Source: Phaeosaccion multiseriatum (taxonomy: Eukaryota; Protista; Ochrophyta, other classes). Taken from it: a DNA stretch of 64,000 nt. Below are positions 6,649-38,066 of this stretch, piece by piece. Location of the stretch: positions 3,038,001-3,102,000 of the forward strand of contig OZ218952.1 in the NCBI GenBank assembly GCA_965112735.1, in the 5' to 3' direction. Numbering within the stretch: the first letter of the stretch is position 1; every line of letters begins with the position of its first letter. Position numbers and translations under genes: made by a program. The notes under the pieces are model-generated. The model worked only from the letters and a program-made list of their open reading frames with translations. It did not search any database and was not told where the DNA came from.

Positions 6649-30833
<24,185 letters not shown>

Positions 30834-31351
30834 CGCCTGCCCCGATCAGCTGCGGCCGTGCAAAAATCAGCGGCAGCAGACACGGCCCGTCGCCCAGCCT
30901 TTGCAGGCTGCTAATTGTTTTTTACCCCAACCCAAAGGATGTCAACGGTTGGAGGATTACGTAAGATTTTTTTTTTTTTTTTGTTCCTTCCTTGTCCCTT
31001 TTATTAGAGCGATACGCTTCCCCCTAATGAGAAGTAACGCCCAGCGACAGGCATTGTGCTGAGGATGGATGCGAGAGGAGAGCGAATCTCTCGTCGTTGC
31101 CACGAGTGGGGCCGCTACCTCCCTCTGCCTAAGAGTAGGAAAGTACCCCCAAGCTGAGCGCTCCTAGGGAGAGAGAAGAGACCAAGCTAGCGCCTGGAAG
31201 CTTCTTTTGAGATGAGGAAGTTTCCACTTGGTCTTACGGGTTCAGGAGTGCGGAGGAGCCAACCAGGCCCCAAAAGGTCCGCAACCCACATCTTATTGTC
31301 CTGCCTACCTAATAATACGTAATTGAACCTTCGGCCCCTGACAAGGTTCTG

Positions 31352-31462
31352 GGTTCCAGGTTCTGGCCGGCGCCAGCCGGCCGGGTTCCAGGTTCTGGCC
31401 GGCGCCAGCCGGCCAGGTTCCAGGTTCTGGCCGGCGCCAGCCGGCCAGGTTCCAGGTTCTGG
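31352..31462 (+). repeat. Left subterminal array: 3 full + 1 partial 32-bp units
   Basis: Unit GGTTCCAGGTTCTGGCCGGCGCCAGCCGGCC(A/G); exact 32-bp period. Confidence 0.95.
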
Positions 31463-31622
31463 GGGAACGCCATGTAATAAGGCAATGATAAAGTGAGCCA
31501 CCTAGGATGTGGGACAGACCACACACCCCAGACAACCAACAGCAAGGGGTTCGTATCCTATGTTGAGCGTGTATTAGCTTTCTTTATCAATCTCACTTCC
31601 CTATCTATCCTTCTCCTGCGAC

Positions 31623-32360
31623 ATGCATGCCGTTCATATGAAGCACGTGTTCCCCAACTGGCGACAATCCGGATTCGAACATACCAAACACCTGCTGAAG
31701 AGCCAGGGCCTGGGCAGAGGGATCGTCCAGAACACCGGCTTCCCCTTCTTCATGAGGGCAAGAACGGTCACCCCGCGACGAGGGAGAGGGGGGAGCAACG
31801 CCGTGAGGAGTGACGCCCACGTGGCCAAGCAGATGGAGATGGACATCGTGACTCCCCCCAGGATGTTTGAGCTTCCGTCCGATCATGAATATGGCGACGG
31901 CCACAAGTCCCTCATGATCGACGTCACGCTCACAGATGCCACCAACACCACCAACCGGGCCAAGGCATCGAAGGAGGCACTCGCGGCAGCCAAGAAGGCT
32001 GAAGCGACCAAGCGGACCAGGTATGGGGTGCCACAGGTAGGCATGGAAGGCCAGGGTGGGGACATCCACTATGACCCCACGCGGTACCACCTTGTCCCTT
32101 TTGCAATAGAACAGCAAGGTGCATTTGGCCCGTCAGCACAGATGTTTATAAAAACACTCGCCACCCACATGGCTGGGGGGCACGAACATCTGGACCTGAG
32201 GGCTTATGCGAGGGCTGTTTGCGTCATTCGGCGACGATTAGCCGTAGCGCTCCAGCGGGCCCGACACGAACGATCGGTTCGCCACAGGATCCTGGCTGGT
32301 ATCAACTTTGTTCCAATGGGAAGAACTGATGAGTCAGAGGGACACGACCTCGAGGGCTAA
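31623..32360 (+). CDS. Stand-alone restriction-like endonuclease (RLE, PD-(D/E)xK fold) of the CRE-like non-LTR retrotransposon type
   Basis: Motif order MEMDIV...LMIDVT...AAAKKAEATKRTRY...LVPFAIEQQGAFGPSA..FIKTLA...RRRLAVALQRA matches the RLE pattern (RPD / IDV / K..KY / P.A.E..G..G / SVALQR). No RT domain; an in-frame TAG lies upstream at 31575. Confidence 0.78.
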   Translation: MHAVHMKHVFPNWRQSGFEHTKHLLKSQGLGRGIVQNTGFPFFMRARTVTPRRGRGGSNAVRSDAHVAKQMEMDIVTPPRMFELPSDHEYGDGHKSLMIDVTLTDATNTTNRAKASKEALAAAKKAEATKRTRYGVPQVGMEGQGGDIHYDPTRYHLVPFAIEQQGAFGPSAQMFIKTLATHMAGGHEHLDLRAYARAVCVIRRRLAVALQRARHERSVRHRILAGINFVPMGRTDESEGHDLEG

Positions 32361-32596
32361 GTTCCCCGGGGCGGTGAGACATTACTTTTAGACAACCATA
32401 GATGGCACTTAAGGGTGTAATATATAAGCCTTTTGAGACTCCACAAAAGTCCAACGCTTCTCTCTCTCCCAGCCTTCTTGTATTACTTCGATTACTTATA
32501 TGAACACCAACTACACTTTACGTTCCTCATGCTACCTAACTTCCCCCCTCATGCCTCTGGCAAAACTCGCTGTACTCTGTTCTCGGCATTCTGTTG

Positions 32597-35500
32597 ATGG
32601 TCAAAGTACAGCACGTGCCGGCGACATGCACAGTTGTCCTGCGAGATGCTCGCCTCAAGGATACCGGCGGAGTGGCAGTAGTAGGCGACTGTGTGTACAT
32701 TTGCAGCAGCAGAGACAACAAGTTGTACGTTGTTCACGTCAAGGAGTCATTGACAGGGTCTCACGAGACGCACGATTTTGACGAGGGCCGGGATGGGATT
32801 GACACTGTGGAAGGTGGGGCGGGTGTGCCAGGGAGGAAGAAGAAAGCCGAGCTCAAGATAGTGCAGACACTGCAGCAAAGTCAAGGTGACGCCCCAGGGA
32901 AGGTCGTTGAGCACTTCATGCCGCTTCGGAGTCCCATTGCGGTGTGTGTAGGGTTGGGCTCGGACAAGGACTACGATCTTTTCGTGTCTCAGCAGCTGCC
33001 GGGGCGTAAAGGGGGGCTCGCTCAGCTCTCCTTTCGAGCGCGCGACCCCACCTCTGCCCTTTGCACTGTGGTCGCCTCGCTTCCCGGAGAGCCGGCAGGT
33101 GTGACTGCTCTTTCGGCTTCTTGTATTGCAGTACTCGTGGATAGGTCCTTGTTCGTGTTGGACAGATCTTCCCGACAAGACGAAGCAAAGGAGGGGAGAG
33201 AAGAGCAGAAGGAGGAAGAGGAGGAGGAGAAGGTAGAGGAGGAGGAGAAGGAGGAGGAGGAGGAGGAGGAGGAGGAGGAGGAGGAGGAGGAGGAGGAGGA
33301 GGAGAAGGAGGAGGAGGAGGAGGCGGAGGGGGGGGGGAGGGGACAGGGGGCGGAGGTGGAGGAGGAGAAGGATTCTGCAGAGACGGTCGAAGCGCGGAAT
33401 GAGCATCGCACGAGGAGCAGAGCTAGAGGAGAGTCTAGGGGGGTGAGGGGGGGGGCGGGAGAGGGTGGAGGGCATCTATTGCTCGCAGTGGAGAGCGTTG
33501 GCGAGGCGCCCTGTGGATTGCATGCAGCACCGACTGAGGTGTCCGAAGATGCGGATGCGAGACACGTCATGTACGTGGTTGATCAAGGCGACCACTCCGT
33601 CAAGATGTTGTGGCAGAGTGCTGCCACAGAGCAATGGACTGTACGTGTGGTGGCAGGCGGCATCGGCAACGACAAAGCGGGCAAGAGCACTGGGAGCGGC
33701 ACGGCCAAAATGGTCGCTCTCTTCAAACCTACCTGGGGCTGCTTCCTTGGTGGGAAAAGTTTCCTGTTCTCAGACAGTGGCACACAGTGTATCCGGCTTC
33801 TTACGGACATGTACCCTCTAGCGGAGCGCCTTCTTCCAATGCTCCGGCGCTTGGCCGAGGCGTACCAGCTCCTCCCTTCCTGCGCTGTTGACGGCGTGGA
33901 CATGCACAGAAATGCCAAGTCATTGACCGAGTCTGCAGCCAAGATGGCCTCTGTGCACCTCCACGTCGAAAAGCTGGCAGAGGACGCCGCAAAGCGGACC
34001 GGGAAGTCGCTCGCATCCGTTCAGGGGCCCGAGAGCGCCATCTCGCCTTCGCTAAGGAAGAGCATCAAGTGCGCCGTCATCGCCTTCTCGAAGCTGATGA
34101 AGAGGCTGAAGGAGGAGGTGAGTCACAAGTGCCACGACACGACGGAGGGGAAGAGCCCACTGCCTGTCTGCCTTGCTATTTTTTATCTTGCGCTGACATT
34201 TCCCCCATCTCCCCCTCCTCCTATACCGATGCTCCCTTGCTCCACTTTGGGTCTCTCTTGTCCTGCAGGGAGTGCCTGCACGTGTGACCGACAAGATTAT
34301 GGCTAAGGCATTGCTCACCTTAAATGTGGAGACCAGCTTCACGCAGTACCGCAATGGGGGTGGGGGGAACACCAACATTCCAGATGTGCTCCAAGTGCTT
34401 CGACGGCGACAGATTGTCGGGGTTGAGATGGCGAAGCGATGGAGTGGTGGCAGGGGATATGTCTACAACACGGACAGCAGGTCCAGCGGCAAGCAAACGT
34501 TCCGCGGCCACTACCACCACTCTCTCAATTTCAGCAGGCGTGTCGCTGCCCCCGTCTATACATGAGAAGGAAAGTTCCAGCACGCTCTCTATCTCCAGCG
34601 GAGCAAGCGACGAGAGAGCAGGAGCTGCGTATACATCGTCAGGCGGCTCGAATCATGAGGCCATGATGCGTAACGCGGGTCACAGACAAGGGAAAGGCCC
34701 AAGTTGGTTCTCTTCCCCTGTCAATCGCGTACGACAAGATCGAGAGTCTGGGTGATGACACGTCTGGGTATAAGCCAGGTTCGAGCAGCTTCAGGGGTGG
34801 AGGGGGGGGGCAGAGCAGCACGGGCACCCAGATCGTGCACCAAGAGGGAGATCTGGTCTACGTGAAGGCTGCGAATGGCTCGGGCAATGAGCTCTTCTTT
34901 GTGGTCCAGCTAAGAGAAGACGTAAAGGAGGCGTACAAAAAGGTCTGCAGAGGAGCTGGAAAGACAGTGAAGATGGGAAAGACAGTAGAGCCTTCACACC
35001 CGGGCGTGCGACATTTTTTCAAGGGCAGCGCAGGTGGGGATGAAGCAAAAGGTGGCTCCGGTGATGTGGTATACAACTACACCCATGATGCAAGCGTGAA
35101 CGTGGAGGCGATTTATGGTGCGTTGACTTCGTTCGGCAACGCGGCCTACCAGTACGAAGGCTTCTCAGTTGGGACGGAGGGAAAGCAAAAAAAGAAGGGC
35201 AAGAAGAAGGGAGGGAAGGGTCAAAGCGCTTCGTCAGTCCCCTCTGATGTCGCCACCACCAGCCCGACCATGCAGACACTTTTGACCAGGCGCTTGATGC
35301 GCTTTACCATCACGGAGGAGGAGCATGACAGCATCGTCGGTATTGTCAATGACTCAAGCAAAGAGGATATCGACAGGCAAAATCGAGGCTTACGCGAAGC
35401 AGATGAGGAGGAGGAGGTCGCATCAGAAGACGAGGACAGTGAAGACGAGGGAGAAGAAAGCACGCCTCATCAGCGCAAGCTGGGAGTTATGGTCAGCACG

Positions 35501-35746
35501 AGGTCGTCCCGGGGCCGGTCGACAGGGGCGCCAGTGAGTTACAGAGATTTGCACATCGGCAAGAAGAGGAGGAGGGGAGGGACAGTGTGTGTGGTGTGCA
35601 GGCAGGACGTCACAGAGGAGCGTCCACACATGCTGCTATGTGATACTGACGCGTGTGGTGGAGAGTATCACCTCGGCTGTCTGACGCCTCCTCTCACTGA
35701 GGTACCTGGGGGGGATTGGTTTTGTCCGGCGTGCCGCGAAGGGTAG
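32597..35746 (+). pseudogene. Disrupted transposase-like gene: NHL-like beta-propeller, catalytic-Glu region, BAH-like segment, acidic linker, PHD finger
   Basis: Exon 32597-34117, phase-0 intron 34118-34268 (GTGAGT...CTGCAG), then exon from 34269 (LLTLNVETSFTQYRNGGGGNTNIPDVLQ). A frameshift near 34560 and an in-frame TGA at 34664-34666 follow, after which the frame is open into the PHD ORF ending at 35746. Confidence 0.68.
35588..35734 (+). other. PHD finger (C4HC3) coding segment
   Basis: CVVC...MLLCDTDACGGEYHLGCLTPPLTEVPGGDWFCPAC, a canonical PHD signature. Confidence 0.93.
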
Positions 35747-35952
35747 GCTAGTAGGTTGGCGCGCGCGAAAGAACTCTGAACTCTCCATTATAAAATGTAT
35801 ACATGACGTATATATATATATATATATATACTATTTTTTTATTATTTGTATACTATTTTGCGGTCCCAGCCACACACGATGGGCACTCAGGGCTGGGCAT
35901 CAGTCCCTCTTTCCCTCAGTCACCCCTAACCTGGAACCGAAGAGCTGGGTCA

Positions 35953-36097
35953 GGTTCCAGGTTCTGGCCGGCGTCAGCCGGTCAGGTTCCAGGTTCTGGC
36001 CGGCGCCAGCCGGCCGGGTTCCAGGTTCTGGCCGGCGTCAGCCGGCCGGGTTCCAGGTTCTGGCCGGCGTCAGCCGGCCAGGTTCCAGGTTCTGGCC
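35953..36097 (+). repeat. Right subterminal array: 4 full + 1 partial 32-bp units, same orientation as the left array
   Basis: Same unit with GCCA/GTCA loop variants and a 32-bp period. One inverted half-unit AACCTGGAACC lies at 35928-35938. Confidence 0.95.
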
Positions 36098-36175
36098 AGG
36101 GTCGCCTCAGAACCTTGTCACGGGCCGAGAACCTGTCCAAGCTCCACCACATATCGCCGGCGCCAGCCGGCTATC

Positions 36176-36226
36176 TGCTATCGGCCGGCGGCCGATAGCA
36201 TGCTATCGAGAATGTGGTCGATAGCA
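36176..36226. other. Two abutting perfect hairpins sharing TGCTATCG/CGATAGCA arms
   Basis: TGCTATCGGCC-GGC-GGCCGATAGCA (36176-36200) is followed directly by TGCTATCGA-GAATGTGG-TCGATAGCA (36201-36226). Confidence 0.85.
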
Positions 36227-36410
36227 AGTCAGGGGTCGAAAGAGTGGCCCACATGGTATCCTTTGAAGCATCTGACGCGGGAGGACCTAGCTGAACTGGA
36301 GCTAAGGAGGGAGATCGACTTTACTGATGGACACTTGGACTTGCGGATCGACATTCGGTTCAGATCTGAAGCTACTAATATGCCAGAGATGAGCAAGAGG
36401 TGGGCGTGGT

Positions 36411-38066
36411 TTATGCCAAAAAGTCGGCGTCAGAAGGCACGTGCGAGCCAAACGCCGAGATGCCCTTTCTCGGCCGATCTCTGCTTCTGCCCCTGCTCCT
36501 GCTCTTGCTCCTGCCCTTGCTCCTTCTACGCGAGCTACGCGCGGCCTTGTTGCCTCCATCCTTTCCCTCCCCCTGCTGGTCCTTGTACGGCTGCTGCGAA
36601 GTCCGCTGATTGCTGCTACCTCCATCTCGGGAGCTTGCTGCTGGGGAAGGCGGCTCCGTCAGACGGCCTCTGCCACCACCACCACCACCGCAGCCATCGT
36701 CGGGCGAGGGGGAAGGTGAGGCGAGAGGAGAGGAGCGGTCCCGTTCGGCCTCTTCGCAGGTGATCCGCTCGAGGCGGACGGCGGGTTGCTTGACTCGAGC
36801 CTTCCTGTCAAGCGCCACTGCCTCCAGGGCCCGCGCTTGCGCCTCACACCCAAACCCCGCCTGACAGGACATCCAAACGGCCTCAAAAATATCGGCCAAA
36901 CTGTCTACAAAGAACTGCCAGGACGTCTTGGGACTCAGCATGTTCTGTAAGCGTCCCTTCTCCGTGGGCTTGAGAGAGCTGTCGTCTGCCCCCCACTCCA
37001 CGAGGTGCGGGACAAGATCATTGTGATCCCGAGTAATGGCGTGGTACAGCGCGGTGCAGCCTTTCCCATCAGCCTCATTCACGTCCACCCCATGCCGCGT
37101 CAGCAGCATCTGCAGAATGTCGGCTTGACCAGTCCTCGCAGCCACGTGCAAAGGTGTCCGCCCGTCAGCGTCTTGGCTGTTGCAGCTCGCGCCTGCCTTG
37201 AGCAGGAGGGCCAAGCAGTCGAGAGCTCCGTATTCCGCTGCCTTGTGGGACGCCTGCTGACCTCGCCCCGTCCTCAATGACCAATCCGCCCCGACCTCGA
37301 GCAAAGCCGCCACCACCTCTGGGCTCCGATTGACGCACGCCCAATGCAAGGCGGTGAAGCCCGAGGCGCCCGTGAGGTTAATTCCCTCCACTCCCCTTCC
37401 CCTGCTGTGCGTCTCCATCCCGACAAGAATCTCCTCGCAAACGACGAGGGGGGCGTCTGCGATTGCGGCCAGTACCAAGGCAGGGTGGCCCTCTCTGTTC
37501 GGTAGCAGCGGGTTGGCGCCCGCCTCGAGCAGTGTCTGGATGATGTCGATGTTCCCGTGCGTTACAGCGAGGTGGAGCGGAGTGTCACCATCAGTATTTC
37601 TCGCATCTAAGTCCAAAAAGCGTCCCGACCGGATCAAGGCACGTAGGCTGTCGCCAGAAGCAGCACAGGCAGTGTAGTGCAGCTCCGTGTTCCCAGCCGC
37701 GTCCACGGGAGGAGTGTGCTCCTCCCCGGCTGAGGCTTGTCGGCGCTCGTGACCAGCCTCGCCGCCAGACGCACCTCTTGGCGAACCATTGGCAGACCTT
37801 GGTGACGACAAACGAATCCTGCCGTACACGTTGGGCATAACCACCATCTCTCCACGAGCTACCGGGGAAGGCACGCTGTCATCATCAACAGGAGAGCGTG
37901 GTGACTCTTCCAAACTTGTCCATCTTCTTCTCCTCCGTTCGGGATCGATACTCTCCAGTCTCTCTCGTACACCAGGAGGAGGAGAGAAAGGCCCAGCTCG
38001 CAGCTTTCGATCGCTCTCTAGGATGACCGCCTCCCCCCCCGAACTTCCCCCGCTGCCGTCAGCCAT
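36411..38066 (-). CDS. Ankyrin-repeat protein (single exon, about 7 repeats)
   Basis: GNTELHY, GDTPLHLAV, GHPALVLAA, GFTALHWAC, ASHKAA, GRTPLHVAA and GCTALYHA repeats in a 551-aa ORF. Confidence 0.9.
   Translation of the reverse strand: MADGSGGSSGGEAVILESDRKLRAGPFSPPPGVRERLESIDPERRRRRWTSLEESPRSPVDDDSVPSPVARGEMVVMPNVYGRIRLSSPRSANGSPRGASGGEAGHERRQASAGEEHTPPVDAAGNTELHYTACAASGDSLRALIRSGRFLDLDARNTDGDTPLHLAVTHGNIDIIQTLLEAGANPLLPNREGHPALVLAAIADAPLVVCEEILVGMETHSRGRGVEGINLTGASGFTALHWACVNRSPEVVAALLEVGADWSLRTGRGQQASHKAAEYGALDCLALLLKAGASCNSQDADGRTPLHVAARTGQADILQMLLTRHGVDVNEADGKGCTALYHAITRDHNDLVPHLVEWGADDSSLKPTEKGRLQNMLSPKTSWQFFVDSLADIFEAVWMSCQAGFGCEAQARALEAVALDRKARVKQPAVRLERITCEEAERDRSSPLASPSPSPDDGCGGGGGGRGRLTEPPSPAASSRDGGSSNQRTSQQPYKDQQGEGKDGGNKAARSSRRRSKGRSKSRSRGRSRDRPRKGISAFGSHVPSDADFLA

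Follow-up and report, generated by a model that had tools for sequence, protein, structure and literature searches.

Eukaryotic cut-and-paste transposons are divided into only about twenty recognised superfamilies, most of them defined in animals, plants, and fungi, and clusters of subterminal repeats are common in the P, hAT, and CACTA elements. The transposases of the P superfamily have a signature of two aspartates, a D(2)H motif that comes right after the fifth beta-strand at the start of the insertion domain, and then a glutamate (PMC8230255). The same DxxH motif occurs in hAT, Kolobok, MuDR, and Dada as well as in P; the target-site duplications are approximately 8 bp long for P and hAT, and 6 bp long for Dada (PMC3706591). 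Here, we describe an element of 4,798 bp (31331-36128, + strand) in a stretch of 64,000 nucleotides from the ochrophyte Phaeosaccion multiseriatum (GenBank assembly GCA_965112735.1, contig OZ218952.1, positions 3,038,001 to 3,102,000 of the forward strand). This whole stretch is called “the window” below, and all coordinates are counted within it. The region is likely to be a cut-and-paste DNA transposon, bounded by terminal inverted repeats (TIRs), in a copy that has decayed and is non-autonomous; its autonomous relatives carry one long gene. To date, the family to which it belongs is known only from metagenome assemblies, as “hypothetical proteins”.

The two ends and the duplication that encloses them are visible directly in the DNA. 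The left TIR (31331-31351, + strand) and the right TIR (36108-36128, − strand) are each 21 bp long and are complementary at 20 of 21 positions, with one mismatch. When the 64 kb were searched for such pairs with up to three mismatches allowed, these two sites were the only ones returned, and none was returned from 100 shuffled sequences. The hexamer GAACCT abuts both arms on their outer sides, flush with the termini (31325-31330 and 36129-36134), a match that chance would give in about 1 of 4096 cases. Because the next bases outward, the seventh, are unequal, the target-site duplication is exactly 6 bp long. The boundaries are also fixed independently of the window: identical terminal bases close related elements in two metagenome contigs, L006 and L009. 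Both contigs encode relatives of the large gene of the element, and next to these shared bases lie their own arrays, with units of 30-33 bp across the relatives. The termini in the window are thus not a chance pair.

Inside the two ends lie arrays of a 32-bp unit, with 3.5 units on the left (31352-31462) and 4.6 units on the right (35951-36097). Every unit is on the + strand; in other words, the two arrays are direct and are not mirror images of each other. Each unit contains a GC-rich palindrome and the short motif AGGTTC, which is also present in the inner part of the TIR. The sequence-only reading of this DNA had already proposed the TIRs at these positions, the 6-bp duplication, TCGG at the termini, and the same direct array inside each end, and all of these were confirmed. 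The ends are shared among lineages, with the similarity stopping at the termini. An LTR-like (long terminal repeat-like) interpretation of the direct arrays was considered and rejected, because the extreme ends are inverted rather than direct and reverse transcriptase is absent. A scan of metagenomes for the array unit gave just two chance bacterial matches, and a scan of viral sequences gave none. It may be added that the duplicated GAACCT reads, on the opposite strand, as AGGTTC, which occurs at 31344-31349 in the inner TIR and twice in each array unit. This agreement may be due to chance, or the enzyme may favour targets that carry the motif it binds.

Relatives of the large gene in this element were collected with HMMER, in an exhaustive search for which its first large exon served as the query, the exons being searched apart. 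A total of 43 proteins were obtained, about 25 of them convincing (best expectation value, E = 1e-45). Every one of them was found in an assembly of metagenome or read-archive data, and “hypothetical protein” is the only name that any of them has. A word-indexed protein search for which the query was the conserved portion of this gene gave no match, and the same type of search with the N-terminal part of one homologue, P0014, gave one close relative and no more.

The termini and arrays of the window are directly seen again around these homologous genes. L006 contains a unit of 10.7 kb bounded by a perfect 23-nt TIR, the first bases of which are those of the window copy, and with direct 33-bp arrays inside both ends; in L009, a 33-bp array is followed by the same terminus, three bases short of the end of the contig. 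L013 and L014 have a sister-type terminus, a perfect 23-nt TIR, and subterminal repeats, and in L003 and L010 the gene is followed by 31-bp arrays. When five ends are compared, positions 1-7 and 10-13 are identical, position 8 is the same in four of the five, and position 9 is variable. Further inward, the TIR of each lineage resembles the unit of its own array. The large gene is the only gene common to all of the related loci, and it is accompanied by the same termini and arrays in at least four lineages. The contigs of L003, L006, L009, L013, and L014 stop at the element ends, within a few dozen bases of them, or inside the arrays, as is usual for multi-copy repeats in short-read assemblies.

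Intact relatives encode a single protein of approximately 1,000-1,340 amino acids (aa). Several loci have a gene of 230-270 aa immediately upstream of the large one, and the two are joined into one protein in natural single open reading frames (ORFs), namely P0014, P0010, P0060, and L011:273-2066. The order of the domains, which can be followed directly along the alignment, is an N-terminal region with two aspartates and a DxxH..K motif, a six-bladed NHL propeller with a helical bundle, a conserved glutamate, a beta-rich domain, and a C-terminal PHD finger. The first aspartate is conserved in 7/7 loci, as is the second, which comes approximately 190-215 residues later, past a cysteine-rich stretch. 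The DxxH..K motif lies approximately 30 residues beyond the second aspartate and is present in 7/7 loci and 13/13 proteins. About 500 residues past this motif there is an acidic position, which is occupied by glutamate in 12 and aspartate in 4 of the 18 aligned rows, the remaining 2 having a gap. From this pattern of motifs, we infer that the protein is a DDE transposase with a giant insertion domain. Strands are predicted before all three aspartates, at a predicted local distance difference test score (pLDDT) below 50.

The propeller is supported both by PDB profile searches (E = 1e-8 to 1e-12) and by the outcome of a fold search (probability 1.0), and the propeller and the helical stretch are modelled with a pLDDT of mostly 80-95. 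The fold search, made with the model of P0002, returned propellers only, which mask any weaker match of the other domains. Profile searches of Pfam and PDB gave NHL and PHD only. The cysteine/histidine-rich stretch between the first and second aspartates (approximately residues 345-410 of P0014) is conserved in P0010, P0060, P0054, and P0005. It is probably a zinc-binding insert; its resemblance to a fungal Zn-cluster domain is weak and non-significant.

In the window, the large transposase-derived gene (32594-35746, + strand) is broken, although it is collinear with its counterparts in L003 (P0002), L004, L006, L012, and L013. Its parts, all on the + strand, are the N-terminal blades of the NHL-type beta-propeller (32594-33180); a GAG/GGA trinucleotide expansion that gives a glutamate-rich tract within the propeller region (33189-33372); the last propeller blades and the helical region (33476-34117), which is the best-conserved part of the family and to which all of the true matches align (query residues approximately 295-508); and the PHD finger (35588-35734; Pfam PF00628, E = 1.9e-9). 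The PHD finger is also C-terminal in the two longest close homologues. Besides this expansion, which is of low complexity, the gene carries a single frameshift and a single premature stop, the latter within aligned sequence. A further frame change is probably an intron, because it has canonical intron borders and two relatives shift frame at the same place. None of the N-terminal catalytic exons has a tblastn match in the window, and thus the three conserved aspartates are missing from this copy. Judged from its sequence, the window copy is non-autonomous, because the N-terminal catalytic part has been lost and the gene bears a frameshift, a premature stop, and the low-complexity expansion; it could move only with protein supplied by another copy.

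The sequence-only reading had anticipated much of this. Two co-oriented coding regions are indeed present on the + strand, the PHD finger was found by Pfam, and the NHL assignment was upheld by the profile of the relatives and the fold search. The element was also held to be of an unclassified family, and no family model in Pfam, PHROGs, or NCBIfam recognises its protein; the suggestion that this copy is probably non-autonomous agrees with the state of the gene. As for the trinucleotide expansion, long GAG/GGA and related tracts are frequent across the window, host genes included (also at 17600-18200 and 21650-21900), and a repeat scan of the whole window is dominated by microsatellites.

The smaller of the two genes, ORF1 (31623-32360, + strand, 245 aa), occupies the place of the missing N-terminal part, and L006 also has unconserved genes at this place. 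It is probably a passenger or a lineage-specific gene rather than a nuclease, as its lack of relatives suggests. It had been proposed from the sequence that ORF1 is a restriction-like endonuclease (“RLE nuclease”) that contributes to mobility. In favour of this proposal, its open frame of 260 codons would be expected by chance approximately 0.04 times in the element at its base composition, according to our estimate, and its GC content at third codon positions (0.675) resembles that of the host genes. However, no PD-(D/E)XK nuclease domain was recognised in it by four libraries, Pfam, PHROGs, and NCBIfam among them, or by PDB, and none of these gave a match of any kind. A word-indexed search among 5.8 billion proteins within its length range also found nothing, and no counterpart exists in any of approximately 10 related loci. 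The proposal that ORF1 is such a nuclease is therefore highly doubtful.

On one side of the element is a dynein heavy-chain gene, encoded on the minus strand, and on the other is an ankyrin-repeat gene (36411-38066). Pfam confirms the dynein heavy chain at 7755-18236, and its presumed first ORF ends at 30833. The presumed first exon (29229-30833, minus strand) has no Pfam match, so that the placement of the element about 500 bp upstream of the dynein start has this ORF as its sole basis. Neither Rfam nor a search for transfer RNA (tRNA) genes gave a match within 30500-37000, and thus no RNA gene was found at the insertion site.

Just to the right of the element, 6 bp beyond it and next to the duplication, there is a stretch of approximately 105 bp (36135-36239, − strand) that contains an exact copy of the 16-mer at the core of the array unit and four of the six GCTATCG motifs of the window, in alternating orientation. 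It closes with a terminus that is identical over 12 bases to the ends of L013 and L014, and the type of the GCTATCG motif is also shared with them. By these motifs, the stretch is identified as a relic, left by the right end of a sister-lineage element. With this relic lying beside the element, the family has struck the intergenic space between the dynein heavy-chain and ankyrin-repeat genes at least twice. Position 36239 was also tried as the true right end of the element itself, and was rejected because it has no duplication and gives a worse TIR.

How might such an element move? The following scheme, in which the fold of the catalytic part, the binding of DNA at the arrays, and the targeting of chromatin are what we infer, can be proposed. 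The N-terminal region with its two aspartates and DxxH motif would form, together with the later glutamate, a DDE active site of the RNase-H-like type. The propeller and the helices would act as the insertion domain, placed where the P, hAT, and RAG1-type enzymes have theirs. The protein would bind the subterminal units of 30-33 bp, each of which contains a small palindrome, at intervals of approximately three helical turns. It would then pair both TCG-CCC termini, cut them, and join them to the target with a stagger of 6 bp, while the PHD finger and the beta-rich domain would tether the complex to chromatin.

If this scheme is right, the family would add the propeller as a new solution to the problem of the insertion domain in RNase-H-like transposases, and its fusion of a transposase with a PHD finger would offer a natural case that bears on how mobile elements choose their targets in chromatin. 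In practical terms, the family is invisible to Pfam, PHROGs, and NCBIfam, and its description would improve the annotation of repeats in protists and algae.

Several observations weigh against taking the large gene for the transposase of a mobile family. No Pfam transposase family matches any member, even at E = 10, and no solved transposase was matched by three profiles in a PDB search carried to the same value. The AlphaFold model of the N-terminal part has a pLDDT below 50, so the RNase-H fold is unsupported by the model. The 6-bp duplication has been observed once, in the window copy alone, and in L006, the sole relative for which both flanks are available, the two sequences (CTTCAC and TCATCT) are unequal and may derive from different copies in a short-read metagenome assembly. 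Moreover, L006 carries further unconserved genes inside its TIRs, and the true enzyme could in principle be something else. These extra genes, of 243 and 712 aa on the minus strand (L006:290-4549), have no family match, are unconserved in the other loci, except that the 243-aa gene weakly matches L004, and may be passengers. They nevertheless lend some weight, as does the failure of every library to recognise a transposase domain, to the idea that a host gene, captured or carried as a passenger, encodes the NHL/PHD protein and that the real transposase is another protein, absent from most of the contigs. We consider this idea unlikely, because it is the large gene, and not the extra genes of L006, that is common to all loci and accompanied by the same termini and arrays in at least four lineages, and because the invariant aspartates, DxxH motif, and glutamate fit a catalytic role. 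A more radical view would be that there is no mobile element here, but a pair of host genes between chance repeats. A single copy is visible in the 64-kb window, as this view would have it, but a 20/21 TIR that is not expected at all from the shuffles, the flush 6-bp duplication, and the recurrence of these termini and of the array architecture in unrelated contigs, around homologous genes, make it hardly credible.

If the large gene does encode the enzyme, the question is where the family belongs. The boldest reading, conceivable but less likely than not, is that it founds a new superfamily of eukaryotic DDE transposons, which would be defined by an RNase-H-like core interrupted by a propeller, fusion to a chromatin reader, a 13-nt terminus combined with lineage-specific same-strand palindrome arrays, and 6-bp duplications. 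It is quite conceivable, if still short of probable, that the family is instead a very divergent member of a superfamily that already has a name, the likeliest candidates being P and the others with DxxH (hAT, Kolobok, MuDR, or Dada), and that the propeller has replaced the usual insertion domain. Subterminal repeat clusters of the kind described here, being common in P, hAT, and CACTA elements, would suit such a membership. The order of the first aspartate, the second aspartate, the DxxH motif, the large insertion, and the catalytic glutamate is that of the P element and THAP9 (PMC8230255) and fits the DxxH group as a whole, and 6-bp duplications are made by Dada (PMC3706591). On the other hand, the Pfam transposase families and the solved transposase of the P element gave no significant match, neither a THAP nor a BED domain was found in the family, and the 6-bp duplication differs from the approximately 8 bp of P and hAT. 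On its motifs, the family may be a very divergent branch of the D-D-DxxH-E group that comprises hAT, P, Kolobok, MuDR, and Dada.

The comparison can be made closer for each of these systems. With the P element and THAP9, the family shares, besides the order of the catalytic residues, short TIRs, internal subterminal repeats, and functionally asymmetric ends. However, no sequence similarity is detectable in Pfam or to the solved transposase of the P element, no member gave a match to THAP, and the NHL propeller and helices stand in place of the GTP-binding insertion domain. The distance from the first to the second aspartate is approximately 190-215 residues here and approximately 70 in P, the cysteine-rich stretch lengthening it about threefold. 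The family has a C-terminal PHD finger, and its duplication falls outside the 7-8 bp that would be looked for in a P element. Dada resembles it in having a DDE enzyme with a DxxH motif and in its duplications, the window copy lying within the range of 6-7 bp. Dada elements, however, have no TIRs and insert into small nuclear RNA and tRNA genes, whereas the elements described here have TIRs of 21-23 bp, with no RNA gene at the site in the window. With hAT, Kolobok, and MuDR, the family shares a C/DxxH motif after the second aspartate and, on the reading proposed here, an RNase-H fold interrupted by an insertion domain, but it matches none of their Pfam families. The duplication lengths and termini of these three probably also differ from those of this element.

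A last parallel lies outside the cut-and-paste transposons. The integrases of chromodomain-bearing LTR retrotransposons carry a histone-reader module C-terminal to a DDE-type enzyme, which suggests a tethered choice of target; the present family has a different class of enzyme and a different reader, the PHD finger. What is new in comparison with all of these systems is the propeller in the role proposed for it as an insertion domain, the fusion to a PHD finger, and a conserved terminus combined with lineage-specific same-strand arrays, in a family that is invisible to the libraries searched.

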